A stretch of 64,000 nucleotides of DNA from Eutreptiella sp. 'Long Island Sound 2002' (taxonomy: Eukaryota > Protista > Euglenida), in the NCBI GenBank assembly GCA_964036045.1, contig OZ038378.1, forward strand, positions 28,334,001 through 28,398,000, read 5' to 3'. Every line of letters starts with the position of its first letter. Within the stretch, counting starts at the first letter, position 1. This document shows, piece after piece, positions 2,005-47,848 of the stretch. The notes under the pieces were generated by a model. That model searched no databases. It had not been told where the DNA came from and saw only the letters and a program-made list of their open reading frames with translations. The position numbers and the translations under genes are program-made.

Positions 2005-3732
2005 CTAGGGCACATAGCGCCTTTGCGCAGTCCCATGCTGCGCCCCAGCCCAGCCGCCTGCTGTGCCCTTGCGCAGCCGCGCTCCGTGACCCTGCGCGGC
2101 ATCACACCGCTGCCCTGTACCTGCGCAGCCCCGCGCAGCGCCCCGCGCAGCCGCTTGTTGCACCCCTGCACACTCCTCCACTGCGCACTTGTGCAGCCAT
2201 GCGCCACGCTCTTGCGCACCCCCAAAATGAGGCCCTCGCTAGGCCCCTGCGAAGCCCCGCGTTGCACCCTTGCGAAGCCCGACGTTGCGTCCCAGCGTAG
2301 CCCCATGTTGCACGCCTGTGTTGCCCCATGCTACGCCCAGGCGGAGCCACACGCTGCGCCCCTGCGCGGCCATCCGCCGCGCTCTTACGCCGCCCCACGG
2401 TTGCGCCCCTTGCTCCGCCCCTGCAAAGGCCTGCACCGCACCCCTAGGTAGCTCCACACTGTGCCCCAGCGCAGATCCGAACCGCACTTTTGTGCAGCCC
2501 CATGCTGCGCCCGTGTGCAGCCACACACTACCCCCCTGCTCAGCCCTATGCCGTGCCTTTGTCCCTGCGCAGCCCCGCACAGCGCCCCAGCGCAACCGCG
2601 CGCTGTGCCCTTGCACATTTCCAGACTGCGCGCCTGTGCAGCCATACGCCGTGCTCCTGTATTCCCCCACACTGCTCCGTAGCGTAGCCGCCTAATGCAC
2701 CCCTGTGCAGCCCCATGCTGGGCTCGTGCGCAGCTTCACGCTGCGCCCCTACGCCCCCCCATGCCACGTCCCTGTCCCTGCGCAGTCTTGCGCAGCAATG
2801 CTACACAGCCCCACAATGTCCCCGTGCGCAGCTGCCTGCTGCTCCTTTTGGCGGCCCCATGCTGCGCCCGTGCGCATCCACACATTGTGCCCTTGCACAG
2901 TCCCATGCGGTGCCCCTAGCCTTGCGCAGCCCCGCACAGCCCCCGAGCTCAGCCGCCTGCTGTGCCCCTGCACAGTCGCAGACCGCGCCCCTGTGCAGCC
3001 ATACACCGTGCTGCAACGTACCCCCACATAGCGCCCTAGCGCAGCTGCCTAATGCACCCTTGTGCAGCCCCATGTTGTGCCCCTGCGCAGCTACATGGTG
3101 TGCCCCTACACAGCCTACTGCCGCGCCCCTGTCCCTGCGCGGTCCCCCACGGCGCCCTTGCGCCCCACAGTGTGTCCTAGTGCAGCTGCGTGCTGCACCC
3201 CTGTTCAGCCCCATGCTGTGCCCGTGCGTAGCCACACGATGTGCCCCTGCACAGCCCCATGCTGCGCCGCTGTCTCTGCGCAGCCCCCCACCACCTCCAG
3301 CGCAGTCCTGCAGTGCGCCCCTACGCAGCCATATGCCCCACTCCTGTGGGGGCCCACGCCGCGCCCCTTGTTGCGCTCCACCGCAGCCGCCTGCTGCAGC
3401 CTTGCGCATCCCCGCACTGCGCCACTGCGCAGCCCTGCAGTGCGCCCTTGCGCAGCCCCATGCAGCGCCCCAGCAAAGTCCCCCTCTGCTCCCTTGCGCA
3501 GCCATACGACGTGCCCCTGCGCGGCCCCACAATGTGCCCTTTGTTGTGCCCTTGTGCAACCCCACACTGCACCCTTGCGCCGCTCCACACCGTGCCCCTG
3601 TGCCTTCGCAGCCCCACGCTGCGCCCCTGTCCCTGTACAGCCCCGCGCCTTGCCCCAAGGCTGCCACTTGCTGCACCCCTGCACAATCCCGCACGGCGCC
3701 CCTGCGCAGCCATATGCTGCACCCCTGCACCG

Positions 3733-3925
3733 CCTCAAGTAGGTTCTCCAGCATCGCTAAAAACCACGCCGCATTGCCGTTGGTAACGCCCATGGGTGTC
3801 ACCTCCCAGGAGGGGTCCAAGTGGGGTGCTCATGGCTGTGCAGGCTGTGCAGGACTCATTGGCGAAAGGTATCTGGCGGTAGCCATGTTTCAGGTCGATC
3901 ACCGTGACGATCCTCGGCTTTAACT
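3733..3925 (-). pseudogene. Ty3/Gypsy reverse-transcriptase fragment embedded in the satellite
   Basis: IDLKHGYRQIP...TAMSTPLG and, in another frame, WEVTPMGVTNGNAA...MLENLLE are Gypsy RT motifs. Confidence 0.8.
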
Positions 3926-5789
3926 GTTTTGCAGCATGTCCTCGTTGAGGCAACCTGTAGCTGTCATGCCCCTTGGTGCGCCCCTGCGAAGCCCCTCACT
4001 TCACCCTTGCGCAGCCCCACGCTGCGCCCGTGCACAGCCCCGCACTACGCCCCTACGCAGCCCCACACTGTGCCCCATTGCGGCTCCTCATGGTGCGCCC
4101 CTGCGCTAGGCCACGCCGCACCCCTGTTCCTGCGCAGACCTGCACTATGCCGTAGCGCAGCCACACACGTTACGTCCCTCGGTAGCCCCGCAGTGCGCCC
4201 CTACGCAGCCCCACATGGCCCCCTTGCGCGGCCTCGCGCCGCGCTCCTGTGCCACCCTGCATTACGCCCCAGCGTGGCCGCGCACTGCGCCCTTGCGCAG
4301 CCATACGGCGTGCTCATGCGCCCCCCCACGCTACACCCGGGCACCGCCCCACGGTGCGCCCCTGTGCAGCCACACACTGCATCCTTGCGCTAACCCGTGC
4401 TCCGCCCGTGTGCAGCCACACGCTTCGCCCTTGCCGCTTTGCGTTGCACCCTTGCGCAGCCCCACGGTACACCCCTGCGCAGCCCCACACTTTGCCCTGT
4501 GCAGCCACACGCTGCACCCTTGTGCGTCCCAGTGCTGCGCCTCTTGGCCGCCTTACGGTGTGCCCTTTCTCAGGCCCACGCCGCGCCCCTGTCCATGCGC
4601 AGCCGCGCACTGCGCCCCAGCGTAGCCACACACGTTGCGCCCCTGCACAACCCCGCACTGCGCTTTTGCACGGCCTCGCGCCGCGCTCTTGCGCGGCCAC
4701 GCACTGCGCCCCTGCTCAGCCACATGCCGTGCTCCTACGCGGCCCCACACTACACCCTTACGTTGCGCCACGCTGCGCCCTTGCCCAGCCCCACACTGTG
4801 CCTGTGTCAAGCCTCACATTGCGTCCCTACGCCGCCCCACGCTGTGCCCCTAGGTAGCCACACGCTGCACCCTTGCGCAAACCCGTACTGTGCCCTTGTG
4901 AAGCCACACACTACGCCCTTGCGCCGCCTCGCGCTACTCCCCTACGCCCCTATGCAGCACCACACTACACCCCTGTGCCCCTATCCAACCACACGCTGCA
5001 CCCCTATGCGATCCCGTGCTAGCGCCCCTGCACCGCTCCACGGTGCGCCCCTGCGCAGCCCCACACTGCGCCCATGTGCCGCCCCATGCCGCGCCCTTGG
5101 GCGACCCCGCGCTCCGCAACTGCGTTGCCTCTCATTGCGCTACAGCGCAGCCCCATGCTACGCCCCTGTGCAGCCCCAGGCCGCGCCCTTGCGCCGCCTC
5201 ACGTTGCGCCCTTGCGCAACCACACACTACACCCCTACGCAACCCCACAAGTCGCCCCTGAGCACACACTGCGCCCCTGCACATCCCCACGCCGCGCCCG
5301 TGCGCCGCCTCACGCAATGCCCTTGCGCAGCTCCACATTGCGGCCCTGCGCAGCCCCACACTGCGCCCCTGTGCAGCCCCAAGCTGCCCCCTGCGCGACC
5401 TCGCACTGCGCCTATATGCAGCCACATGCTCCGCCCCTGGGCAGCTCCACGCTGCGCCCACCCGCAGCCCTGCGATGTGCCCTTGTCGCTCGCAGCCACA
5501 CGCTTCGCTCTTGCGCGGCCCCATTGTCCGCCCCTATCCCTGCCCGGCCCCACGCTTCGCCACTGCGTAGTCTTGCGATGTGCCACTGTCCTTGCACAGC
5601 GACGCGCTGCGCCCCTGCACGGCCCCGTGGTGCGCCCCAGCGGAGCCCCACGCCGCGTCCCTGCGCAGCCCCAAGCTGAGCCCTTGCGCAACCCCGCACT
5701 GGCCCCTTTCCCCGCACGGCCCCGCGCTACGCCCCTACGTAGCCCCGTCTTGTGCCCTTGTTCCTACATAGCCACACCCAGCGAACCCC

Positions 5790-5990
5790 CCTCCCCCCGC
5801 CTCGGCAGCGCGACACTAGCATCCTCGTGGTGTGGCACCAGTCGCATAATGGCGTTGCCGGAAGCTTGTGTTCACGTGTCCCCGCTCACCTTGCACCCCA
5901 CGCTAAGCACCCACCGGTTGCCAACCACCCCTGGGTGACGCGCTGGTGGCGTTTTCGGTACGCCAAGGGCCTGTGGTGAGCTTTCCCCGT
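5790..5990. repeat. ~200-bp 'head' unit, copy 2
   Basis: Diverged homologue of 20-213. Confidence 0.75.
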
Positions 5991-7559
5991 AGCCCTCCGC
6001 TCACCCTGCGTAGTCTCACATTGTGCCCCATTACGGCCCCACGCTGCGCCCCAGTGCTGCCGCCTGCTGTGGCCCTGTGCAGCAGCACGCTGTGTTCCGG
6101 CGTAGCCGCCCGGTGTGACCCCGCACAGCCACGCGTTGTGTTCCTACGCAGCCACACGGTGCGCCCTTGAGTTCCTGCACAGTCCCATACTGTGCCCCCG
6201 CACACTAGTGCGTTGTGCCCCTGCACAGTGCCACGCTGGGCCCCAACGTAGCTACACGCTATGTTTCTGTGCGGCCACACGATGCGCCCCTCCGCCCCCC
6301 CACGTGGCGTCCCTGTGCAGCCCCACACTGTGCCCCTGCACAGCCCCACGCTGCCCCCTTGCGCCACCCCACACTCTGCCCCTTTTCCTACGCAGCACGG
6401 CATTGTGTCCCTGCACAGCCCCACTCTGCGCCCTTGCGCAACCCCACATCGTGCCTTTGCGGAGCCCCACACCGCACCCCTATGCAGCCACGCACTGCGC
6501 CGGAGTCCCTACACAGCCACACATTGCGCCCCTGCGCATCCCCACGCTTCACCCCTGCGCAATCCCATGCCGCCCCCCTGCGTAGCCGCACGCTACGCCC
6601 CTTCCCGTGCACAGCCACCCGCTGCGCCCCTGTGCAGCCCCAGACTGCGCTCCTACGCAGCCCTTCGCCGCGCCCCCGCGTAGCTCCACGCTTCTTTCGT
6701 GTGCAACACCACATTGCGCCGCGACGTTCCCCCTTGCCCCTGCACGGCTCCATGCTCTACTCCTGTGCAGCCATGCGCTGCGCCCCTTCGCAGCCCCACG
6801 GTGCACGGCTGTGCAGCCCCGAGCCCTACCCCTGTCCCTGCGCGGGCCCACGTGTTGTGTCCCTGCGTAGCCACCCGTTGCGCTCCTACGCAGTCCAACA
6901 CTGCGCCCCTGCACTATATGGCATTCTGCCTCTACGCTGGCCCATGCTACGCCCTTGCGCGGTCCCACGCAGCGCCCCCACACGGGCTCACACTGCCCCT
7001 TGTTGCGCTCCTCCTTTATGACCCCACGCTGCGCCGCTGCGCGGACCCACACTGTGCCCCAACTCATCCTTGCGTTGTTGTCCTGCGCAGCCCTATGCGG
7101 TGCCCTTGCGCACCCACATGAGCGGTCCCCCTCCCCACCAAGAAAGGCAACACCACCACACCAACGCGCAGCACCCCCCCCCCCCTTCACACGAAACTTT
7201 TCCGGCTAGTGACAGCCCCCTGTGGCGCGGGCTGTGCTGTCACTCGCCCGCTTCGGCCCACCCTGACGGGACGGAGTAAACGGCGCTATGGATCGTTGGG
7301 GGCGATTCGTTCTGGCAGCCCCTCTTCGGCTTTGCCGTCGCCTGGGGCGGGCCAATCAGAATCTAGCATCCAAAATCCCCCCACCACCTCAAATTGCCCC
7401 ACCTGGACCCCCCCTCCCTCCCACCAACCCTCCGGGCCGCCCATCCTTTAGCCCCCCCCCCCCCCGCCGCCCACTTTGGCCCACTTCTACTCGGGGTTGG
7501 GGGGGGGTTGCATACAAAAGCGAGGAGACGGCCCCCAGGTGATGCACTATTTTCTCCAT

Positions 7560-12094: not shown

Positions 12095-12500
12095 GCATGA
12101 AGGCTGCAGATCACGCGTGAGTCATGTGTGCGAATTCTGCAGGGTGTAGGATACCCGTTCACTGTGTGGGAGACCATCCAAGTGGTGCAGAGTCAGCAGT
12201 CGGACACCATGATCCTGGATGGGTTTGCGCCACGGCCGCAAAAACACCTAGGCCTACCGGGGATCCCGGCGGTACGCAGACTGCTGAACCAACCCTTGAC
12301 CTCGCTGCCGGCAGTCAATATGGGATGCCTACACATGCCAAGCAAGAAGAGAGTGTTGCAATCAACTTCTCATGGCCCGTGACCACAGGGCATTTCCGAG
12401 AAGATCTCCCCATAGCGTAATGCTGAGAGATTTGACAAAAAAGGACAAAAAATGGTTGTTCAAACATTGGACTTTAAAGAGGCAATTTGGCTCTAGCTGA
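12095..12500 (+). pseudogene. Frameshifted LINE RT N-terminal subdomains
   Basis: MKAAD (K-A-x-G/D motif), K.PRPTGDP..., QPLTSLPAV (cf. RPI.L), then MVVQTLDFKEAI (cf. LDFxKAFD) at 12452-12487. Confidence 0.55.
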
Positions 12501-12524
12501 CCTAGGCGAGCCTCCATTTGATGT

Positions 12525-12554
12525 CACTTTCTGAGTGTCTATTTTATTTTTTCG
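12525..12554 (+). other. Euglenid spliced-leader (SL) exon sequence embedded in genomic DNA
   Basis: CACTTTCTGAGTGTCTATTTTATTTTTTCG vs the Euglena SL as recalled, ACTTTCTGAGTGTCTATTTTTTTTCG. It is followed by ATTGAC rather than the GT expected in an SL RNA gene. Confidence 0.85.
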
Positions 12555-12841
12555 ATTGACCCTCAGAATTTTGTTGATGAATCCACCACTAGTCCAGGCT
12601 GTTTGGTGATTGGAGAAAATCCTGGGCTGTTCAAGTTCTGGGGCAATTTCCGTGGATTATTGAATATAATCTCTCCAACATCGAGCCACCGTCATTTCCT
12701 TGGTCAACCATTTGTGGTTTACATTGCCTACATCGCTATTTCCATCCCAAACCGCCTTTTTAATTCATCAACGCCTTTGGACAACAAGCGCCAACTATTC
12801 AAAATGTCGTTCTTTGGTATCGGATCAAAAACCAAAACTCC

Positions 12842-14422
12842 GTGTATCCCGCTGCCGTCTCCCTTTCCAATCCCAAAGGGAATTGCTCATGGTGCGCCGA
12901 ACTCTGGTCTACGCCCAAAACTTCGTGGGAAAACAATTACGTTAAATTTGGAACTTACGAGACCGATACCCGCATGTTTGATTCCAAACTTTTTATAGCC
13001 CACTCCAAAGTTCGCCAATTTCTCTACAACAAGCACCCGTGTGATCGTGACCTACGAGGAACCGACTTCACCAACGCCTTCATCAACATATATATCAACA
13101 AGCAAACCCAACACTCATACCTATCTCCCGCTCATGACTTGTTCTTCCACAAAGACGAGTACCTCCCGAGAGTGGCGTTCTACCTTGCACCTCCAATAGA
13201 CAAGGCGGGGCTTCGGCCGACCTTAAAAATGTCCAAACACTACGTGGAGCTTTTGAAGACAAATCTTTCCTCTCCGAGCACTCCAATCCGTGGATGGTTT
13301 ATCACAACTAGCTTTGATACGGAAATCTCTTCAAAGGCGTTCCTTCCCATTATGAATGGCTCCCTTATCCAAATAAAAGACTACATATCCGAGATTTATG
13401 TGTTCAAGGAGACGAAGAATCAATTCTCCTTGGTACGAAACAACGCGCCCAACTTTGTGGAAACGAATGGTCAATCCCTTCCTACCGTTGCCCTATGGCT
13501 AGATAGCCGAAAATCTAAAACGGATGAAGTACAATTCTTTGATGTGAACCTTCACGAGCCCACCCTTGCTGAAGCCTTTCAACACGCTCGCATCCCTAAA
13601 CCGCCCGCCACCATCAACTCCAAAGTCCGAATAGATGTCTCCCTCAAAATGTTACGTTCATTCTACGAAGAAGCCAAAATTCGGAACCAGAAAATCCAAG
13701 GGGATTTCATGCCTACGGACAGCCGGCTCATGCAAACGGGTTTCAACCGAGCCTTCGGAGGTTTAAGTGACATGATGAGCATCAACTCATCGAATGCTTT
13801 CTACCCGCGAGGTGGGATGCGAAATTTTGCCTCTCCTCTTGAAGGTTTTGTTACATATGATTGGGACTTATCGCCGCCCTTTGACATCTACTTGCGCAAC
13901 GCGGTGGTCAACTCTCCGGCTTTCGCCAATGGAGACATATTCATCATGCGAATTGAGGATCTCCATAACACGAGAACTTTCCAGGTAGTCCCCTCTCGAG
14001 ATTGCAAGTCACGCAACCCCGATGACAAGGCGGGTGATGTTTGGTCTATCACAAGGAGAAACTATGCGGCCCATCCAAGATATTGCATGTATGAAGGTGC
14101 GCTCATCAAAAATCAATCAAGCTTGTTGGTTACTTTAGACTCCTCGGTGGTGGCATGCGGGCTGCAAAAGACCCCGCTACAAACCTTTGCTACACGGATG
14201 TTTCGTGATGATGGTTTTTTGCTATTCAAAGGACCGGCGGGAACCATGGTCCCATTATGCAATGAAAAGCCGCAAGCATTGAACCTTACCTCGTCGGCCG
14301 TGCCTCAAGATAAATGGCCTCTCCCCAAAGACTCCGTGCGCACACCTAGTGATCCGTGCCTTGTTGAAGTGGCCGCCCCTACGACCGAGACCGAGAAGGT
14401 TAGAACAGGCTTTCACTGTTGA
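12842..14422 (+). CDS. Intronless 526-codon ORF, unknown protein; likely SL-headed retrocopy (possibly pseudogenised at its 5' end)
   Basis: Long, non-repetitive, stop-free ORF with lower GC than its flanks. The same frame is open from 12764 and, past one TAA at 12761, back to 12593. Six N-x-S/T sequons; no recognised domain. Confidence 0.7.
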   Translation: MYPAAVSLSNPKGNCSWCAELWSTPKTSWENNYVKFGTYETDTRMFDSKLFIAHSKVRQFLYNKHPCDRDLRGTDFTNAFINIYINKQTQHSYLSPAHDLFFHKDEYLPRVAFYLAPPIDKAGLRPTLKMSKHYVELLKTNLSSPSTPIRGWFITTSFDTEISSKAFLPIMNGSLIQIKDYISEIYVFKETKNQFSLVRNNAPNFVETNGQSLPTVALWLDSRKSKTDEVQFFDVNLHEPTLAEAFQHARIPKPPATINSKVRIDVSLKMLRSFYEEAKIRNQKIQGDFMPTDSRLMQTGFNRAFGGLSDMMSINSSNAFYPRGGMRNFASPLEGFVTYDWDLSPPFDIYLRNAVVNSPAFANGDIFIMRIEDLHNTRTFQVVPSRDCKSRNPDDKAGDVWSITRRNYAAHPRYCMYEGALIKNQSSLLVTLDSSVVACGLQKTPLQTFATRMFRDDGFLLFKGPAGTMVPLCNEKPQALNLTSSAVPQDKWPLPKDSVRTPSDPCLVEVAAPTTETEKVRTGFHC

Positions 14423-14820
14423 TTGCTTTGATGATATTGTTTTGTTGATGCCCCTGCTTGCTCCTGCTGCTTCTTGATGTAGTTCAGGTTTTCCAAACAA
14501 ATAAGTTTTGATGAAATCAACCCAAATAAGTACCCACAGTTGCAAGGCAAAGGACCACAGGATCAAATCCACAACATGAAGGGCTGCAGTCAAAGGAGAT
14601 AGTGTAGCAACAAAGCAAACTCACAATAACTACATATTTATGAAAAGATAGTTAGAAAATATCCTACAAACATGGAAAAACTGCCCACATGGGCATCCTC
14701 TCTTTTATAGTGCAATCTAGAGATGTGCACTCTTTGTTTTGGGTCCCATAGGTGCTGAGGTGGCATGGCTTGTGGCGCCGAGGTCACTGCCATCTCACAT
14801 GGGATCTTCCTACTTAGCTA

Positions 14821-14897
14821 GGCTGACTGGGAATTGAACCCAGGACCTCTCAAAAAGAGGTGCCACAGCCCCCTAGGCTGCAGACCACTAGGATAGG
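14821..14897 (-). pseudogene. tRNA-derived (His-like) fragment or SINE head
   Basis: Minus strand has TAGTGGT (A-box-like), a CTGTGGC loop (GTG) and a perfect T-arm CTGGG-TTCAATT-CCCAG, but no acceptor stem. Confidence 0.4.
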
Positions 14898-16183
14898 TAA
14901 GCATTCATGAGAAAACATAGAAAAATGTATAGGCTCTGGATCACTGTCAGCGCCTCAGTCAGTCCAGGAAATGGTGTATAAGTCCGATCAGTTGGGGGGT
15001 CAGGGGTCCACACAACATCCATTATTCAATGCTTGGTTTTATAGGTCAAAATGTCTTGTCACCCCTTTTTGGATAGGCTAATACCAAGATAAAAATGAGT
15101 TATGCCTTTAGGCCTCTTTATAACAACTAAAGCTAACCTTTTGGCAGGGAAATACACTTTTTTTTACTCCCCCCTTGTGCTGTGGTGGCCACCATTGTCG
15201 CATTTTAAAGGAAAAAGGGAATTTTTCTTGGCCTCCCCATGGCTTCAACATCTATTTAAAATTTCCTATAACATCCCTAACATTGGAAAGAAGGCGCTGC
15301 ATCACGGCAGTCGCCTGGTTTTGCTGAGTCGTAACAGACACCTACACCTCCCACTGCGCTCATTGGGGTCGCTGGGGCAGCTGTGGCTTGGTAGGTGGTT
15401 AGAATGGGCATCCCAATTCATGTGTGCACAACCCTCTCCCTCCAAATGGCAAAACGCAATGCAATACACAAAACCCAACGCAGGATGTGATCACAGCACG
15501 CTGTTTTCGGGGCTCAATGAACCTGCTCTAAGACCTGATCTGTCCTTAGTGCGTTGGAAATTAATTTACCCTCATGGGGGTTTGGGATTCAGTACAGTGG
15601 TCCAGGAGTCACTTTTTCGGCCTGAACACGGCCTACTCCACTGTTTGCGCTCCAGGATATCTGCAGAGAAAGGACGAAGGGTTGAGGGACTGACAAACAC
15701 GCAACGATCGACGCAAACACCCAAATCCGTCAAATGACGGCGTAGAAATTTTCTGACATCACACACCTGTCCGGAAACTCCATGTGCATTAAATGCACAT
15801 TTTTACGCAATTTTATTTCATCACAGGAATTTTTCAATTCCTGGATTTACACGCAGAGAAAAGCGGCGCGCCGGAGCGCATCCTAATTGGGCGCTGGAAA
15901 AGACAGAAATAATGAGATTATAACAGTATGTCACGTAATAATAAGAAAATGACGAGACACACAATTAATAATAAACGTAGAAATTCCAGCTTTGCTTCTA
16001 GGAGCAATCAAGAAGAAAGAATTCAAGAATTCAAAATCAAATGAAAGAACAAGGTATAAACATTTAGGTCTTGTTTGCTTTGTATGCAGCATGCACATTG
16101 CTTGTCTCGTGTTATCGTGAACTCGCCGTGTAGCAACGCAAACATAGAGTAGAGGGACAGATTAGAAGATTGTACGATGATTA

Positions 16184-18778
16184 GGACCCGTCTTTTTTTC
16201 AAAACCTGAAGCTGTAGCTTCAGAAGGCCAAGACCCCCCCCCCCCCCCTCCCGGTGAAGCTGCCCGACCAAATCTGCAAGTGGTTGCCTACCAGCTTTGC
16301 GTATTCCTTTACTAACCAGTGTTGCACATGAAAACGCCCTCCCTTTTGGAACCCACAAACAAAACACAAGCAATTGAAGCATTAATGGACACCAAAGTGT
16401 GACCTCATTGATCATTTGCGTCGGAGTCACCTCAACGACTGGAAACAACAGTAGACATCCAATGGAGTTATCTAAATGTCAACGACACCTGAATCACACC
16501 TGAACTGCTCAAGAAGCCACGGCGGCAGGTTATCCTCCGGTTCGACGGTGTCGCTCTCTGCCCCAAACCCCTTCCAGCGCACTTGATAATGCACCTTCCC
16601 GCGCCTTTTTACTGATTTGATGATCCTTTCAGGCTCATACATGGTCTCATCACCATTTTCTCTCTCATATGCATCTACCAAGTCCTGACAATGGCGCAAT
16701 GACTCTGCGGGCTCCTCTGTGTCATCCCCCTCCCCATACCCTTTCCACCGAACTACATAATGCACCACCCCATCCCGCATCGCTTTCCCAACAATGGCCT
16801 CTACCTCTGCCTCGTCCTCCCCTTCACTCTCTTCTTCCCCGCGGCGCTTGTGAGGGACAACCTTATCTACTCCCCGGTAGGCTTTGGCCCTTTTGGCCCT
16901 TTTGGGCGGGGGCTTTTGGGAGAGGTTGCGTTTGGACCGTCCATGCACCACTCGCATGTGTCGCTTCAAAGTGGCGTGTTTGAGGGTCTTCCAACATGGA
17001 CACAAAGGGCAGACAAACACACTTTCCCCTTTCGCAAGTGGGATACCCTCGGGGAGCTCGCGACATGCATCAATGGACTCCAAATATGTAGGGAAATGAC
17101 CCTCCAAACCCGCACTCCCCTCCACGGAGTCCAGAAACTTGGGAACCTTTGGCAAAGGGTCGGGGGTGACGTTGTTGATCAATCCTTTGCAATACCGCGT
17201 TTGAGCGAGCCACACGTTCCAATGCGCTCTTCAAAATCTCCATGTCAAAGACCGACCGGTGCTCCGATGCCATGTCAAAAATGTCGCAACAAGTCGTACA
17301 AAGGTCACGCACGATAGCTTGTGGAGGTGTAAGCATAGGGGCAGCATCATCAAGGGTGGAGGAGGACCCAACGTCAGTGCGAGCGGATGAGGACGCAACG
17401 GAGGCAAAATGGTGCTCTTCAACGTCACAAGTGCTGCTACTACTTGCAACATCCGATTCCGCGGAGTGCACTACTGCGTCCAACCGCCACCAAAGAGTCA
17501 AAATTCTTGCGAAGTTGAAGGGCCCCCGAAGCGAGCAAAGGTAAAGGCCGGGGTGGCTTGGTTACCTTGGTTCTCACGATGAACTTGTCCATATGTGGCA
17601 AAAGGCAAAAAGGCTGTCGGACCATGGATTTGTGTGGAAATGTGAAACAACTCATAGCGCAAGGCTCTCGGCACCTCTACAACCAAAACTAAAGCAGGGG
17701 CGTGCCTTCGTACAACAAATGAACAACGTTGGACCACATTAAAAGCCACTAGCGCACTTTGTTGACGTCGCCGTTTTGACATGCACTGCAAATCTAATTG
17801 TATCATCTGCTCACTAGTACACAGGAAAAAAACCACTCCTTGTGCGAGGCTCCTACGACCTCTACAAACAAAAGTGAAGCAAAGGCGCACCTTCCTACAA
17901 TCAATAAACACCGTTCGCGCGCAGTAGGGAGGCCCGGGTCGCACGGCTGACGTCGCCGATTTTAGATGCCATAGCAATGCAACGCAAATCGGAATCCAAC
18001 AAAAACACAAGGCAGAGTGGAAGGCTTCTACGAAGTCTACAACCAAAATCAAAGCAAGGCTGTGCATTCATATACGGAATCAACACCAGTGCACTTCAAA
18101 ACAAATCAAGACAAATCCTGCAACTTGAGACAATTGTGCATTGTGTGGCACTCACATGGTGAATGCTATTGCAGCTCAGAATTCAGCAAGGCATTTGAGG
18201 CAGAATCGTACAATTGTGGCACTCGCATGAGTCATGTTGCAGAGCATCCACCCATTCATACCTTAACAACGATGCGCCTACCTCAGTTGCCTCCTAGTCC
18301 ACTCATCTTCCACTCGGGCTCCTCCGGCTTCAAGGGACTTGTGATCCCCCATACACGTAGGCGTGGCAAAAGCCGAAGCAAATGCGCCCATTAACGTGTA
18401 CCAGTCCCCTCCCAAGTGCATTGATGCACCCAAGGGGGACAGCCGGTGTGGGCTGAGGCACCACACCAGGGTTTAGCCAGATCCTTAACTCCGGGCCTTC
18501 TATCATCCACCGGAGTCACCCTTGTTTCCGAATCGTGTCCTAATTGGCAATTGGATAGAACTAACACTATTAGCATCGTTGTTAAGGCCGTCGATGGGCT
18601 GGCCTGCTGTGAGCGCGCCGCCGAAGGCAGGGAGCGCGCCGCCACCACAGGCCCCAAATCCGCCAAATCAGGTCCAAATTTGGCATTGCACAAATTTCTC
18701 CAGCTGTGAAGCCGGCCCCAACCCCCCCCCCCCCCCCTCTGAAGCTACAGCTTCACGATTTGAAAAAAAGACGGGTCC
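16184..18778 (-). mobile_element. PIF/Harbinger-like TIR element carrying a chromodomain gene
   Basis: 41-bp TIRs GGACCCGTCTTTTTTTCAAAACCTGAAGCTGTAGCTTCAGA (16184-16224) and 18738-18778 with 2 mismatches; TTA duplication at 16181-16183 and 18779-18781. Confidence 0.88.
16472..17215 (-). CDS. C2H2 zinc finger plus two tandem chromodomains (C-terminal part; upstream exons likely within 17.2-18.4 kb)
   Basis: CPLCPCWKTLKHATLKRHMRVVH; EVEAIVGK...HYVVRWKGYGEGDDTEEPAESL; YEPERIIKS...HYQVRWKGFGAESDTVEPEDNL. Confidence 0.85.
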   Translation of the reverse strand: MWLAQTRYCKGLINNVTPDPLPKVPKFLDSVEGSAGLEGHFPTYLESIDACRELPEGIPLAKGESVFVCPLCPCWKTLKHATLKRHMRVVHGRSKRNLSQKPPPKRAKRAKAYRGVDKVVPHKRRGEEESEGEDEAEVEAIVGKAMRDGVVHYVVRWKGYGEGDDTEEPAESLRHCQDLVDAYERENGDETMYEPERIIKSVKRRGKVHYQVRWKGFGAESDTVEPEDNLPPWLLEQFRCDSGVVDI

Positions 18779-19031
18779 TTAGAGGTGAGATTGGGTGATT
18801 AGAACATACACACGCGCGCATAAACGCTTGCATCGTTTGTGACTCGTTTCTTCTCTCCCTTGCTTCGCTCTCCAGTGGTAGGTAAGGTAAGTAAGCCCAG
18901 GAGGGGCCACCCCCTGGTGGAGTTCGTGCTTGTGGTATGGATTGTGGGAAAAAAGGATGATTAGAGTGGGAGATTGACGGCTTCGTGCATACGCGTGCAT
19001 GCATATGGTGCATTTAAGGGTAGGCCACGCG

Positions 19032-19752
19032 TGTTGCGCACGGTAAAACCCTTGTTTAGGTTACTCAGGGGCTCCACCCTACTTTCTTTAAGAGAACGGG
19101 TGGAGTTCCTTAAGCTTGCTTGCTTGCACTTTGGTTTGGGAACAGCGTATTATAGGGCAGTCTAAGAAGCGTATAATACGTGGAGGCTGTCTTGGTTCCT
19201 CAGTCTCAAACCCAAGCCATTTGCCTTTGCTTTACAGGTGGGCAGGTCAGCGTGAATAGGTGCGGTCCCATGCCGTGCTAAAGCATACGGCGCTGATCAC
19301 ACAATCAACAAACTGCGCCTCAGCCAGGAGTGGCGAGGGCAGTCCGACATCTTCGACATCCACGCTATGCACGCAACCTGAGCACTCCTTCCCTCCAAGC
19401 CCTGACAGGGAAACGCGTAGTGGCGTCCCTGTTAGGCCACAATCGCTTAGTAGCGCTGTGTTCTCTTGTTCTTTTCGCAGGTAGGCCACTAGGGCCTGTG
19501 ACACGCTCATCATCAACACCAAGTAGCGTGTGTGTGTAGGAGTGGCAAGCCAGGGTGAGGGCTTGGGCCTCAGAGCCCGCTCATCCTTCGATGGCTGGTG
19601 CCACTGTAGTGAGTGTAGGACCTGTAGTGTGTGTGTCATTGTCCCGCCTGTTTCCTGAAATTTTATCAGGGTTTTGGTGGGCAGTGGCAGTGGTAGTCTA
19701 GGTTTTGGCCACGTAGCAAACAGGCGTTTTCATGCCTCATAGCTTTTGGCCA
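19032..19752 (-). repeat. Putative 3' LTR of the Gypsy element
   Basis: TG at ~19032 to CA at ~19752, followed by cccctcccct (PPT-like on the minus strand). There is no partner LTR to confirm it. Confidence 0.3.
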
Positions 19753-20054
19753 CCCCTCCCCTTGTAGTAGGCAGGCAGGTAGGAAAACCAAGACCTTGGC
19801 GTTATCGCTGGGTATTCCCCCAAGAAAGTCTGGTGCCAGCACAGAAAGTAGGCACCTAGGGGCGGAGAGACGCGGGGCGTACCCCGTGGCACCGGTAAGA
19901 CATCCGCCGGGTTCAGCAAGGGTGCAGACTTGGGTATAATTAGGACACCATTTCTGCAGCTTGCTCACAGGTCCCCAAGATCAGCACACTCACACACACA
20001 TAGGCAGGTATAGGAAGGGTTCCGTCCCTAGGTTTCTTCTGAGAGGCAAGCGTT

Positions 20055-22820
20055 TCAGCGAGCCTCAGCAACTCTCCTAGGTAGCAACTCTCCTAGGTTG
20101 TTCTGGGACAAGTAGTCAACCAGAACAGAATTCAGGCGTCCCTCTGGAAGCACGAAGGCAGAAAAGGATTCCCAGGTAGCCTCTTCAACTCCAAACCCTT
20201 CCCAGAGGGTGAAGAAACGCCACCCTTGGGGATAGCGGTGTCGAATGACCGACTTCACCAGGTAGAAGCCTTCCTTAGCCATCTCCTCGGCATTCATGCC
20301 GGGGAGTTCTCCTTCTACTTCCATTGGGCTGGCAGCGCCCTGTAGGTCCAGAGCGGCGATCTCCTCGCCGTGCAGTTCCCATTCTTCCCCACAGAGGTCC
20401 TCTGGGTCGTAGTAGCGCTTGAGCTGTTGAGCAGCGCACACCAGGGTCCCCCCTAGTTGGGGAGAACACCGCACGGTGATACGGTGACCATCCACAGATA
20501 GGATCTTGTAGGGCCCAAAGTAGGGGTCATCGCTGGTGCACCGTGGCCAGGCGGGTAGCCGACTGTGGCGCACCAGCACCCAGTCTCCCTCTTGGTAGGA
20601 GGCTGGCACCCTGTGCTTGTTCTTCTTGTTCCACTGGCGCTCCCTCACTCTCTGGAGCATAGCCTTGGCCTTGTCCACCTTGTCTTGTTGTTCCTTCACC
20701 CACTTACCCACAGTGGAGTAGGAATCCTCAGGATAGGGAGCGTGTAGGAACCACGCTGGGCGTCCCATGAACAGCTCATGGGGCGCATAGCCAGTTGCCG
20801 AACTCTCTTGGGAGTTCATCATCAAGGATATGACGGGGAGTAGTCTCACCCAGTCTTTGGTGCGCTCAGTCTTGCACCATATCCTTACGTTCTCTTTGAG
20901 AACACGAATCTGTCGCTCACATAGGGGGTTACTCGTATGAGTATAGGGAATCCCCGTTGACACCTGGACATTGAGGGACCTCAGGATTCTCTTGTACCAG
21001 CCAGTGTCGGAGGGTACTCGGACGCCCTTGTCTGGGTTGATCTCTTTGGGTGCCCCATAGACACAGAACCACTCCTCCAAGAGTATCTTGATGGTCTCCT
21101 CGCCGGTGATGTCTTTAGTACATGGGAACACCCTGGTAAACCTGGTCAACCCACAGGTTACCACTAGGGCAAAGTTATAGCCCCCGAACTTAGGCATCTC
21201 TGTGTAGTCCACGTAGAGAACACTGTTGGCACTGTGGGGGATAGGGAGAGTCAAATAGAGACCTTTGTCCCTGATATCCCCAGGTTTACAGGACCGACAC
21301 GGGCACTTGTCCACGATAGGCTGGAGGGTTTTCCGCACCTGGTCATCCGTCCACGTAGAGTCGAACCACTGCTTGAACAGCCTCAGGGTATGGTTGGCCC
21401 CCACATGACCAATGGACTCATGGGTCCACTTGAGGAGTGCCCGAATTCGGTCGCTAGGCACGACTATCCGGTCCTCATGCCAGAGGTAGGTCTTGTGCCG
21501 CTTCCACTTTTCCTGGTTGACCAGGACGGGTTCCAGACGCTTCTCCGGGCGTTTGTAGATATCCCCAAACTCCTTCAGGTACTCCACCTTTCGGAGTCCA
21601 TCTAGAGGTCTGATCATGGTCATGTTCAGGTCCAGGTGTACATCCATACGGTTGAACGCCTCCTTGGCTAGTTCCTCAGACCTGGCACCAATCATGTCGT
21701 CGAAGTTGTTGCGGTTGATGTAGTCCGCACACTCGTTCTTGACGCCCTGGATATGATGTACTGAGAGCCGTAGCTGGCTCAGGTAGGTCCACCAGCGTCT
21801 GAGCTTAGCCTTCTCAGGTGGGGGTCCCTTCTGGAAGGTGCGGACCGGTTCTTGGTCGCACAGCCAAACCACTGGGTTACTCCCCAACAGTCGGGACTGA
21901 GAGGACAGCACCAGCATACCCGCGAGCAGTTCCTGCTCGTAGGTAGAGTAGTTACCCCGGGCCTGGTTCCATTTCCAATTCCAATGACCCAGGGGAACCA
22001 GGACCCATTTGTCGTCAATGTAGCTGTGCTTGAGAGTACCGTCTCGGTTTAGTCCATGAGTACCCCATTGGGAAATAGCCGAGTCGAACTCCTCCTTCTC
22101 TAGTGCTTGCCACTGGAACAACGTTCCACCTCCGTCCACATTGCTGGCGTCAGTCACCAGGATAATCTCCCCTTGTGCTCTAGGCACGCCCAGGCACTTA
22201 GCGTTGGCCACTTTGTCCTTGAGCTCGTCAAACGCTTGTTGTTCTTGAGGGCCCCAGCGCCAAGTAGTACTCTTCTTGATCAAGTCCGTCAGAATGGCGC
22301 TAGTGTAGGTGAAATTCTTGATGTGGCGGCGGTAGAAGTTGCAAGCCCCAATGAAACTGCGTACATCATGGAGTCCTTTCTTGGGGTCTTCATGTCGTAC
22401 CTTAGCATCCATCAGGGGTTTGGCCTTAGAGGCCGCAGGGGTCCACCACCCATAGCCAATGTCGAACCCCAGGTACTGCATAGTCTCTTGCATGAACTCA
22501 CACTTCACCAACTTGAGTTTGGTGTGGTTCTCCTTGCAGACCGCAAAGAACTCGCCAAAGAGGATTAGGTGGTCCTCTTGGGTATTGGTTCCCAGGCCTA
22601 CATCGTCGATGTGTGCTTCCATCGGGGCGCCCCGGGATATGAGTTCTTGCACCACAGGTCTTCGACGTAGGATGGATAGGATCTTGTTCATCAGCTCTTG
22701 GAAAAGAGCGGGTGCGTTGGCCACGCCAAAGGGCATGACCTTCCACTTGAACACCCTCCCCTGAGGGGTGATGAAGGCTAGGAGTTCCTGGGCATTGGGC
22801 GTCCACTTGCCGGAATCCAC
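20055..22820 (-). pseudogene. pol: Gypsy pol: RT C-half, RNase H, integrase, chromodomain
   Basis: MPFGVANAPALFQ, AHIDD, YLG; LVTDAS...EQELLA...CDQ...ADY; H..GH...CPCRSC; YVDY...PDKG...CER; GPY; LVKSVIRHR...LWEGFGVEEATWE. Confidence 0.95.
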
Positions 22821-23517
22821 TTCGCTTGTCCATCTTCGTCTTGTAGCGGCAGGAGGCTATCTTCTGGAGGGTTGACTCCATATTAGGAATGGACCCTAGG
22901 TGGTTCAACATCTTCTTGTTCAGCTCTCCATAGTCCACTACCAGCCGTTTGGCTGTAGACCCAGGCTTAGCCACCAGGAAACAAGGGCTGCAGTGTTGGG
23001 GGTAGTCCCCATCCTTGTACTCCGGGACCAGGCCAGCGTCGATACATTCTTGTATCCGTCGCTCTATCTCATCAGCCTGCTCTTTAGGTGCCGGATAGGG
23101 CCTCCTTCTCATCTTGTGACCCACGAACTCGGGCTTCAGCTTGAGGTCCATCTGTACCAGCTTGTCACAGGATGCTTGAGCGGCTAGTTCTCGGAATACT
23201 TCCAGGTAGGTCCTGATCAGCTTCTGTACTCTAGGGTCCAAGGGTTTGATCTTGTCCTCCATGTCCTCGTCAGAGTGTAGATTGCTTGCCCCGTGGTGTA
23301 TAGAAGCAGGGAGGTGATCCTCAACCGGCTCAGCGTCCTTGGTCGTATCCTTCAGTCCTTGATAGGCGTAGAGAAGGTCTCGTTCCACAGTCTCAGGTGG
23401 TCGGTGACAACATAGGCACACTCGAGGGGGTTCGCATACGCATTCCTCTGAGAGTTCATCCTCCTCTGGGGTCCTCACATGGGCACCCCATACGCTCTTC
23501 ATGAGCTTCAGGTCCAC
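22800..23517 (-). pseudogene. pol: Gypsy pol: RT N-half
   Basis: RRPYPAP...SPCFLVAKPG...RLVVDYGELN...KMDKRSGFRQV; frameshift near 22810. Confidence 0.9.
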
Positions 23518-23544
23518 CTCTCGCTGCCAGGTGGTAATCCTCTG

Positions 23545-24933
23545 TTATAGGTCCTCCTTCAGTTGGGAGATATCTCCCATAGACCCTTGCTTCAACGGCC
23601 ATGAGCGGCGGGTAGGCCTAGCGTAGCATAGCTTTTTCGCCACCAATCTCCTCTTGGAGTCCACGTACTCTCTCAGCCTGGATCGGGGGTCCAACTCCTC
23701 GTCCAGGGGCTCCTCTCCCCTCATGGAGAGTAGGGGTTTCAGTGGGGCAGCGTACTCGCCGTTCTCCACTTCCTCCACACACGTCTGCACGAAGAAGGCG
23801 TCGTGCTCAGTCTCGTCATCAGAGTGTATAGAGCTGGGTAGCTCGGATAGCCCAAACTCTGAGACTACATCAGGATTAGATACACGGCAAGGGGAGTTGG
23901 GGGCAACAGTGTCAGACACGACGTACTCGTCTCCCCCAGGAGTAGTCTCCACGGCGTCTCGAGGTCGTAGTTGATTTTTCAGGACGTCCAGGGTGTAGCC
24001 GCTGCTCTCACGTTGAATTTCCTGGACCATAGCAGGGTCCAGATCTTCGCAGGGCACTGGAGCTAGGCTGCCGTCCACCACGCTTAGCATGCTCCCCCAT
24101 CAAGGTTTCCCGATGGGCGTCTTGCGGCCCAGAGGCACGTAGATGGCGTCATCCGGCAGCTGGATGGAGGTGAGTGTTAGCTTGTCCAATAGAGTACGCC
24201 AGTACTCATTTCCCCCATGGGCTCCCCAATCGGGAGAGCACAGGACCATACGGGAACGTTCCAGGGCCACCTTGGTCAGGACCTTCCCCAGTTCACTGAA
24301 TCTTGGGTTCCCGTAGGCCATCCCGAAAGAGGGCCAGTAAAATTTATAGCAGCAATTTTTCCCCTTGCTGCAGTAGAGGTCCAGGACATGTTCCTTGTCG
24401 CTGGCGAATAGCTCCACGTTCAGGTCTTCCCGGGAGTATCCCAACTCCTTCAGACCTTGGTCCAAGACATCCCCCAGGAGCTGATAGTCCTCAGTTTCGG
24501 AGGCGACCATCATGGTTGAGGGCTCCCTCTTGCATACCCTCAGGTAGCTAGACGTGTGCTCAGACTGCTCCAGAGGTACAAATTCCCAGCCGTCACCATG
24601 GTCCACTTGGAGGACGTAGGGTGCTTGCAGTGTGAGGGATAGGATCTGGGAGTGCTCGACGAAGAAGTCGGTCCCCAGTACAAAGTCGAAGGCTTCGGTG
24701 TCCATCACGTAGAACCGATGGGCAATGCTTCTAGAACCCACAGGCACTTCGACCTCACAGTCCCCACAACTGTGCACCATATGCCCATCTCCCATGCGGA
24801 TGGCTGCGGTAGGCAAGATGTTCTTCAGGTCCCCACAAGGTAAAATTTTCTTGGCCACAATAGATATAGTGGCCCCAGTATCCAGTACCCCCAGGTATTC
24901 ACGTCCCCCAAGACGGATACGTACCCAGAACAC
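23545..24933 (-). pseudogene. pol: Gypsy pol: aspartic protease, Dam-like methyltransferase domain and spacer
   Basis: LDTGATISIV (protease); VELFAS...YCS...YWP...YGNPRF..LGKVLTKV....MVLCSPDW....YW..LL (DIRS-type MT); frameshift near 24095. Confidence 0.8.
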
Positions 24934-24934
24934 C

Positions 24935-25345
24935 AGGTCTGTAGGCCCCCCGGAGCGTCCCTGTCAGAACTCCGCGGGGCAGGTCACTTCGAACCCCTTC
25001 TTCTGGAGTTTCCGCGCCATGCGCATGAAACGGGAGCGCTTGCGGGCATTAGACTGGTCCCCATCTTCGTTACCACGCTTGGTCCCTTGTTCTTGTTGGC
25101 CTTGCGTCTGGGAACGGGTCGTAGGTCCCGTGTTGGGTTGCCCACCAGAGGGCTCAGGGTTCCGCCCTGGCGTAGGATTGAGGTTCCCTCCGGACGGGTT
25201 CGCGTTCTTGTCCTTCTCAGGCTTGCAGTCGCCGCCTCCTGGTCCACCTTTGCCTTTGCCTCCTTGGCCTTTGCCATGGAAAGAAGGGGCACAACATAAA
25301 CAAAGTCACGCGCCCAGTGCTGGCAGAAGGAGGGATCTTGAGGCT
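24935..25345 (-). pseudogene. gag: C-terminal remnant of Gypsy gag
   Basis: G/K-rich low-complexity peptide (GKGQGGKGKGG...RKRSRFMRMARKLQKKG) directly upstream of the protease. Confidence 0.55.
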
Positions 25346-25953: not shown

Positions 25954-26132
25954 TGGGATGCAGCGTTCTAGGGCGTGGTGCGGAACCCCCCCAATTTTGG
26001 GTGTTGTTAATATGGTTGGAACCCGGAATTTCACATGTTACATGGGTGCACTATGATGCAACAATGTGCCTTCCATGTTTCGTTTGCTCGATATTGCCCG
26101 TTTTGCACTTTTTGCGATTTGATCTTTGTGTG

Positions 26133-26699
26133 CTCTAACTAGTTATCGCGGGGTTAGAACGGGGTTAGAGCACTAGTTATCGCGTGGGTTATCGCGCGAT
26201 AACCTAGTTATCGCGGGGGTTATCGCGGGGGTTATCGCGCGATAACTAGTTATCGCGTGGGTTATCGCGTGGGTTATCGCGCTTCATTTTATGTTTCCCC
26301 TTTTCGCTTTAGCTCTCAACTGACTGGCAACTGACTTGACTGATTTGAGAGGCACCCTATCCAAATCATCCAAAAGACTGTGTGACTGATTTGAATTTGT
26401 GATTGTGGCGCCATGTACCCCGTGCCTGCACATTGTTGACATCTCCAAGGTTTCCTGGGTGCAAAATCAACGTTTGTGAAGGTTTTAGGGTGCCCAACGC
26501 TTGCTCTAACACCACCAGTTAGTGCGCACTAACCCCTGCTCTAACTAGTTATCGCGGGGGTTATCGCGCTCTAACTGGGTGCTCTAACTAGTTATCGCGG
26601 GGGGTTATCGCGCTCTAACTAGTTATCGCGGGGGGTTATCGCGGGGGTTATCGCGCGATAACCTAGTTATCGCGGGGGTTATCGCGTGGGTTATCGCGT
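26133..26699. repeat. Left subterminal array: ~19 copies of GTTATCGCG in two blocks, plus GCTCTAAC/GTTAGA motifs
   Basis: Counted directly in 26142-26282 and 26548-26698; several copies form GTTATCGCGCGATAAC palindromes. Confidence 0.9.
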
Positions 26700-46429: not shown

Positions 46430-47848
46430 GCGCGCCGGGCATCTTTTTTTTGACCATTCACCACCCGTGCCTGTTTTTGCCCCCACCTCACCAAACAATT
46501 TGGAGTACCTTCTCGCCGTGTCTAAGAATTTGGCCCATCCTTTGCACCCAGTTCATGACGATGGCAAGGGTGGTGGTTGGAAGTGGTGGGTGTGACATTT
46601 TGTGTTGTTGAATTCTCATATTTTGGCTTATACAAGGTGCCTTGCAGAGAAGGTTCGCGGTCTAGTGCGGTCTACTTGGGGGACTTCCCAAGGTGAGGAT
46701 AAACTTGGGGCTAGGGATAAGATACGTAATACAAAGGTAGCGCGCCGGGCATGCGCCGGGCAAACATTCCCCCTTGGCGCGCTGGGCGCGCGCCGGGCAT
46801 CTTTTTTTTTACCATTACCCACTCATGCCTGTTTTTGCCCCCACCTCACCAAACAATTTGGAGTACCTTCTCGCCGTGTCTAAGAATTTGGCCCATCCTT
46901 TGCACCCAGTTCATGACGATGGCAAGGGTGGTGGTTGGAAGTGGTGGGTGTGACATTTTGTGTTGTTGAATTCTCATATTTTGGCTTATACAAGGTGCCT
47001 TGCAGAGAAGGTTCGCGGTCTAGTGCGGTCTACTTGGGGGACTTCCCAAGGTGAGGATAAACTTGGGGCTAGGGATAAGATACTTAATACAAAGGTAGCG
47101 CGCCGGGCATGCGCCGGGCAAACATTCCCCCTTGGCGCGCTGGGCGCGCGCCGGGCATCTTTTTTTTTACCATTACCCACTCATGCCTGTTTTTGCCCCC
47201 ACCTCACCAAACAATTTGGAGTACCTTCTCGCCGTGTCTAAGAATTTGGCCCATCCTTTGCACCCAGTTCATGACGATGGCAAGGGTGGTGGTTGGAAGT
47301 GGTGGGTGTGACATTTTGTGTTGTTGAATTCTCATATTTTGGCTTATACAAGGTGCCTTGCAGAGAAGGTTCGCGGTCTAGTGCGGTCTACTTGGGGGAC
47401 TTCCCAAGGTGAGGATAAACTTGGGGCTAGGGATAAGATACGTAATACAAAGGTAGCGCGCCGGGCATGCGCTGGGCAAACATTCCCCCTTGGCGCGCTG
47501 GGCGCGCGCCGGGCATCTTTTTTTTTACCATTACCCACTCATGCCTGTTTTTGCCCCCACCTCACCAAACAATTTGGAGTACCTTCTCGCCGTGTCTAAG
47601 AATTTGGCCCATCCTTTGCACCCAGTTCATGACGATGGCAAGGGTGGTGGTTGGAAGTGGTGGGTGTGACATTTTGTGTTGTTGAATTCTCATATTTTGG
47701 CTTATACAAGGTGCCTTGCAGAGAAGGTTCGCGGTCTAGTGCGGTCTACTTGGGGGACTTCCCAAGGTGAGGATAAACTTGGGGCTAGGGATAAGATACG
47801 TAATACAAAGGTAGCGCGCCGGGCATGCGCTGGGCAAACATTCCCCCT
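46430..47848. repeat. Tandem array of ~4 near-identical 358-bp units
   Basis: Near-identical short ORFs recur at 46602/46960/47318/47676; only a few substitutions between units. Confidence 0.95.

Follow-up and report, generated by a model that had tools for sequence, protein, structure and literature searches.

Why should a spliced leader (SL) exon, which is normally added to an RNA by trans-splicing, stand in genomic DNA ahead of a long intronless reading frame? The question was raised by a locus in a 64-kb (64,000-nt) stretch of euglenid DNA, here called the window. The original prediction offered two answers, a recycled host mRNA or a cis-encoded SL on a mobile or viral gene. Comparison with related copies indicates that window 12524-14393 is very probably the dead 5' fragment of an autonomous APE-type LINE, of which the full copies start with a complete host SL exon.

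The leader exon and the window copy

The stretch 12525-12554 corresponds to the second through the last base of the 28-nt SL printed in PMC3621762, the same paper describing the SL as identical in Euglena gracilis; such an SL is compatible with Euglena or Eutreptiella. The match is exact over its first 21 bases, 3 nt are inserted in the T-run, and the preceding base is T where the SL gene has A. The insertion is absent from 10 other copies and from the SL RNA genes, being therefore private to the window copy. Hence both a full euglenid-type SL and a variant T-run, as predicted, are present in the DNA. A 19-mer of the SL was found only once in the 64-kb window even when 3 mismatches were allowed, with 0.02 matches expected.

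Directly 3' of the SL copy the window reads ATTGAC rather than GT, as had been noticed before. By scanning metagenome contigs for the SL exon, we obtained four genuine SL RNA genes (L011-L014, on metagenome/WGS contigs), in all of which this same exon precedes GTATA and an Sm-like site. The window SL, which is followed by ATTGAC and is present as a single copy with no GT intron, Sm site or tandem array, is thus real, complete and outside any SL RNA gene. Moreover, the 100 nt after the SL resembled the SL RNA introns no more than shuffled sequence did. The locus therefore shows the host SL exon at the 5' end, a junction exactly at the exon 3' end and no SL RNA intron, as is expected of an SL-headed retrocopy. 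Rfam gave nothing at the gathering threshold in the window, and a permissive scan of 12400-12900 gave no ribozyme and nothing meaningful around the SL. As to the SL RNA genes themselves, those on L014 (PJEL010298919.1) are arranged in tandem with 782-bp spacing, and the introns of L011-L014 fall into two types, GTATATAC... and GTATACAT..., presumably from different species.

The long frame of the window is a 526-aa ORF (12842-14422), consisting of LINE ORF1 plus a foreign end of 29 nt. It had been read as coding that begins immediately after the SL without an ATG; however, the relatives have a 5' UTR of about 250-270 nt and a conserved ATG, which places the ORF1 start at window 12804. Nor is the frame intact: aligned with P0001, a relative whose ORF1 is unbroken, ORF1 of the window copy shows 1 frameshift, contains 0 internal stops and spans residues 1-530 of 598. 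The likeness of the window copy to all relatives ends at 14389-14393, at which point the relatives continue together. Therefore the terminal 29 nt of what looked like the ORF, with the stop codon and GTTAGA, are unrelated DNA, and the GTTAGA at 14398-14404 loses its proposed role as a donor of this gene, since it sits in DNA unlike the relatives' continuation. The missing poly(A), also remarked on in the original prediction, is explained by the same 3' truncation. A target-site duplication (TSD) of the window copy was looked for and none was found, and the missing 3' part of the LINE was not found elsewhere in the window. L002, L003 and L008 are also cut at the 3' side, at similar but different points. 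Rearrangement after insertion is the likeliest cause of the truncation. The features are summarized in Table 1.

Table 1. Positions of the element-derived features and their neighbours in the window
Feature	Position	Strand	Remarks
SL exon copy	12524-12554	+	T for A at 12524; private 3-nt T-run insertion
Stretch derived from the element (very probable)	12524-14393	+	Homology to 10 other copies; equals positions 1-1836 of L006:8468-17864
Conserved post-SL block of the 5' UTR	12555-12644	+	84.1% cross-subfamily identity; contains 7 nt complementary to the SL
Variable part of the 5' UTR	12645-12803	+	41.7% cross-subfamily identity
ORF1, broken and 3'-truncated	12804-14393	+	Conserved ATG; 1 frameshift; about 68 last codons missing
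Non-element DNA with the apparent ORF end and stop, and GTTAGA	14394-14422	+	No likeness to the relatives' continuation
Unrelated dispersed repeat (neighbour)	14677-15168		Matches L001:4077-4569 and L005:14756-15153
Ty3/gypsy-like remnant (neighbour)	16472-25300	-	Chromo, RT, RNase H, rve and protease domains

Several other repeats were observed in the window. The dispersed repeat of about 0.5 kb at 14677-15168 contains no recognised domain and adjoins LINE copies at three loci; in L005 it directly abuts a broken LINE end. A search around the neighbouring gypsy remnant revealed no pair of LTRs. About 4 tandem units of 358 bp, 98-99% identical to each other, occupy 46430-47848, and a related unit is found at L005:3996-4387. 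Short GTTATCGCG-type repeats, partly palindromic, are clustered at 26131-26698, and a 573-aa ORF with no Pfam match lies just downstream of them. The region of about 2230-7060 is 66-70% GC with strong negative GC skew and internal repeats that are 63-72% identical, and its long ORFs on both strands gave no Pfam match.

A LINE family headed by the spliced leader

A word search with the window ORF returned 17 paralogue-like proteins, 57-87% identical and all encoded on Mb-scale ENA contigs, and one 90% cluster of ORF1 relatives has 106 members. Ten loci were fetched from the ORF1 matches, all of them in one assembly (ENA ERZ25074135). In the window and in L001-L003 and L005-L010, the DNA homology starts exactly at the SL, while the upstream flanks are unrelated to each other. 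Thus 10 of the 11 family copies are SL-headed, the remaining one (L004) being 5'-truncated; as the copies were sampled through ORF1 matches, the share of 5'-complete copies is inflated.

The full copies show a common layout, namely SL, 5' UTR, ORF1 (about 600 aa), an AlkB-like oxygenase, APE, RT, RNase H and poly(A). In Pfam terms, the order in the longer copies is 2OG-FeII_Oxy_2, Exo_endo_phos, RVT_1 and RNase_H. RVT_1 and Exo_endo_phos were both detected in L001 and RVT_1 in L006, and the order is the same in L005 and L010. The family therefore contains the RT and APE domains of an APE-type LINE, which are absent from the truncated window copy. The AlkB-like 2OG-Fe(II) oxygenase lies between ORF1 and APE (L001:7640-9046 and L006:10001-11677); its closest match is human ALKBH8 (E 3e-13), and L001 retains the HxD...H iron ligands.

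The 9.4-kb reference copy, L006:8468-17864, has an exact 28-nt SL head, a poly(A) end and a TSD of about 14 bp. It is inserted in a gypsy-like element, of which the matching empty site is found at window 19379-19394 on the minus strand. Similarly, L010 ends with poly(A) and has a 16-bp TSD, with an extra G before the SL, and L009 has a 14-bp TSD and poly(A). The 5' UTR of the LINE in L009 also harbors a nested DNA transposon of about 6.9 kb with perfect TIRs of about 24 bp (L009:1115-7985). No terminal repeats (LTRs or TIRs) of the LINE itself were detected; the element thus combines 3' poly(A) and TSDs of variable sequence with the lack of terminal repeats, as a LINE does. As TSDs of 14-16 bp bound the full copies, these copies point to target-primed reverse transcription of an RNA that starts at SL base 1. 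Hence the proposal that the SL entered the DNA through reverse transcription of an SL-bearing RNA is borne out by the exact junction, the differing flanks and the relatives with poly(A) and TSDs.

Which RNA was copied is a different matter. The original prediction suggested the mRNA of an ordinary host gene, retrocopied from an intron-bearing parent elsewhere as in dinoflagellate mRNA recycling, with the SL spliced onto an internal acceptor. An SL head on an intronless ORF would indeed look like this. However, the longer copies run on from ORF1 into AlkB-like, APE, RT and RNase H regions, the family is multi-copy (the 17 ORF1 matches and the 106-member cluster), ORF1 has no relatives outside such loci, and it starts with a conserved ATG of its own. 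We thus consider a host-gene origin very unlikely; the unit represents the 5' terminus of an autonomous LINE, which agrees with the mobile gene of the prediction, and a cis-encoded SL on it comes close to the reading favored here.

The same copies bear on two further readings. A chance match to the SL, or an assembly chimera with cDNA, had been named as grounds for dismissing the locus, but in view of the 0.02 matches expected per window and of the same head on 11 further copies, located on Mb-scale contigs and accompanied by TSDs, either is hardly credible. Equally negligible in our judgement is an SL RNA gene or gene array, or an element inserted in such a gene in the style of SLACS, CZAR or CRE. 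A full SL exon in genomic DNA would fit it, yet the upstream flanks are unrelated between copies, neither a GT intron nor an Sm site follows the exon or the element, there is no tandem array, and the endonuclease is of the APE type.

Among solved structures, the nearest to the RT is human L1 ORF2p. The named outside relatives of the RT from the word search show no more than 31% identity and bear generic names, from which no clade assignment is taken. A distant lineage was also found, in which ORF1 is 26% identical, the gene order is the same and the SL head matches in 25 of 26 bases, followed by sequence that is unalignable. In the sequence P0054/L016 from a sediment metagenome, neither a Pfam domain nor DNA similarity to the LINE was found.

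ORF1 itself is an orphan protein. The relatives found for the window ORF were all LINE copies. HMMER over 1.84 billion representatives gave 52 ORF1 matches; ten of them were looked up, and all 10 came from ENA, 9 of the 10 on large contigs. Pfam returned no family for the window ORF or P0001, and a PDB sequence search with the window ORF gave chance matches only. The AlphaFold2 model of P0001 was poor (pLDDT 48), and Foldseek with this model found nothing in the PDB at E <= 0.001. Meanwhile, the dN/dS between the long frame of the window and L001 was 0.086 over 506 codons, a comparison between subfamilies, indicating that ORF1 was a working gene during subfamily divergence. Judging from its position, ORF1 may serve as an RNA-binding or packaging protein of the element.

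Origin and upkeep of the leader at the 5' end

Across the two subfamilies, the SL is 89.5% identical and the next 90 nt 84.1%, compared with 41.7% in the following 160 UTR columns and about 74% in the body. All changes in the SL are private to single copies. The junction between SL and body is the same in all family copies and lies exactly at the exon 3' end, which argues for one trans-splicing event rather than an SL RNA gene as its source. In the genome this junction reads CG, not AG. No stacked, shortened or relict SLs were seen among the copies compared. RNAalifold predicted helices in the 5' module, including pairing between the SL and the sequence after it, without covariation.

A LINE reverse transcriptase could also have switched templates onto the SL RNA, as in U6/L1 chimeras, and a small-RNA sequence at the 5' end of a LINE copy is what such a switch would leave. 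But the copies contain the exon only, ending exactly at the splice donor with an identical junction in all of them, no variable junctions were seen, and the sequence after the exon does not resemble the SL RNA intron. We regard such a chimera as highly improbable.

Trans-splicing of the element's own RNA is thus the preferred source of the SL, and it may have happened once or in every generation. In the former case, an ancestral LINE RNA would have been trans-spliced and then reverse-transcribed at full length, and the SL with about 90 nt would thereafter have been carried with the element as a selected 5' module. This module could act as an internal initiator and/or leader, with the RNA starting at SL base 1, in a manner akin to Pr77. 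Rearrangement would later have removed all of the window copy 3' of about 14393, and one frameshift would have arisen in it.

In the latter case, the SL would be added anew by trans-splicing in each generation to the RNA of a few SL-less source copies with an acceptor before ATTGAC, and the SL-headed copies would be dead ends. This would explain why every copy started from a canonical SL and all changes are private, and why the SL is kept in the lineage whose adjacent sequence is unalignable; it would equally lead one to expect that three diverged lineages have preserved the SL perfectly. The CG junction also fits, in that an SL-headed copy is not re-spliceable there. On the other hand, none of the 12 loci is an SL-less copy with an acceptor, L004 being merely 5'-truncated. 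Dead-end offspring would hardly sustain strong purifying selection on ORF1 or a family of at least three diverged lineages, the 90 nt 3' of the SL show the conservation expected of a functional module, and there are no stacked or relict SLs. Fresh addition in each generation is therefore a plausible account, but one that we would not expect to be the true one.

The purifying selection and the radiation of lineages imply that SL-headed copies must themselves give rise to new copies. In addition, since the junction is CG and not AG, an SL-headed copy would not be spliced again at the same site, and neither stacked nor shortened leaders were seen. On these grounds, the sequences compared argue on balance, with modest confidence, for inheritance of the SL in cis as a 5' module over fresh trans-splicing in each cycle.

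The first position of the SL deserves separate attention. The 5' junctions were compared, including those of the window (12523-12524), L003, L010, L008, L005, L007 and L015. Position 1 is A in the SL RNA genes and in 4 copies, T in 6 and C in 1 (11 copies), and a G precedes it in three copies, L010 among them. As far as can be read from DNA, these position-1 changes may be a trace of reverse transcription over a capped and modified first nucleotide. A more elaborate proposal can be put together from these elements: the host SL exon would be a heritable, selected and cis-encoded LINE 5' terminus, serving as a portable initiator/leader; the AlkB-like domain would strip the cap-proximal methylations of the SL so that the RT reaches base 1; and the A-to-T change at position 1 (6 of 11 copies) would record that a modified base had been copied. 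As a whole, we consider this proposal rather unlikely.

It should be further pointed out what the family means for the study of euglenid genomes. A third of the DNA of euglenid genomes is unclassified repeat (PMC11252322). The E. gracilis genome paper gives LINEs as 1.5%, with no detail on SL heads, and no description of an SL-headed LINE in euglenids was found in the literature searched. The copies described here provide direct genomic proof that a euglenid retrotransposon RNA bears the SL and is copied to its first base. Full-length LINE insertions in euglenid genomes can be recognized by the SL head as a natural marker, and an SL in DNA should not be read as host-mRNA recycling before mobile elements have been checked. 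The family also brings to light a LINE that encodes both an AlkB-family domain and an orphan ORF1 of 600 aa, and it offers a testable parallel with Pr77 of trypanosomatid LINEs, the recruiter of SL-gene transcription factors.

Comparison with known systems

SLACS, CZAR and CRE of trypanosomatids are inserted in SL RNA genes, always at the same site of the exon, and borrow the promoter of the gene. Like them, the present LINE would have an RNA that starts with SL sequence. However, its SL is complete, its insertion sites are dispersed with unrelated flanks, and its TSDs come from unrelated targets; a fixed site flanked by the two halves of an SL RNA gene was not observed.

Human L1 consists of ORF1 and APE-RT, with poly(A), TSDs and target-primed reverse transcription (TPRT), and has ORF1-only derivatives, HAL1 among them. 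The SL-headed LINE shares the arrangement of ORF1 plus APE-RT, the poly(A), the TSDs and TPRT, and L1 ORF2p is the solved structure closest to its RT. The identity of the RT is low, though, and ORF1 is unrelated; the SL-headed LINE additionally contains RNase H, the AlkB-like domain and the SL head.

An AlkB m6A-demethylase domain is carried by Ty3/gypsy elements of orchids (PMC9289625), which are thus likewise retrotransposons with an acquired AlkB-family dioxygenase. Those elements are plant LTR retrotransposons, whereas ours is a euglenid LINE with a domain nearest to ALKBH8. In the literature searched, no report of an AlkB domain in LINEs was found.

SL-tagged retrogenes of dinoflagellates are described as 'mRNA recycling' of host genes and often contain stacked relict SLs (PMC6050394, PMC5585692, PMC12014239). 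In both cases a DNA-encoded 5' SL marks a reverse-transcribed, trans-spliced RNA. In contrast to the dinoflagellate retrogenes, it is the retrotransposon itself that supplied the tagged RNA here; a single SL of full length is present, and the LINE resides in a euglenid. By analogy, the SL-headed LINE unit would resemble the dinoflagellate retrogenes in its origin.

The closest parallel in function may be Pr77, the hallmark of L1Tc, ingi and their non-autonomous relatives in trypanosomatids (PMC1874656, PMC8190864, PMC3185411). Pr77 of L1Tc acts as an internal Pol II promoter to which TBP and SNAP50, promoter factors of the SL RNA gene, bind (PMC1874656, PMC8190864). Like the Pr77-bearing LINEs, the SL-headed family is a Euglenozoan APE-RT-RNase H element with a short 5'-terminal block conserved across families; its own block is conserved across subfamilies (89.5% and 84.1% against 41.7%), a likeness to Pr77 by analogy only. 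Pr77 is not an SL, and its transcripts are described as unspliced, whereas the block of the window LINE family starts with a complete SL exon. The SL-headed LINE also differs in its separate ORF1 and AlkB-like domain, and Rfam finds no HDV-like ribozyme in it. Taken by analogy, the SL-headed 5' unit may nevertheless resemble the Pr77-type heads in function.
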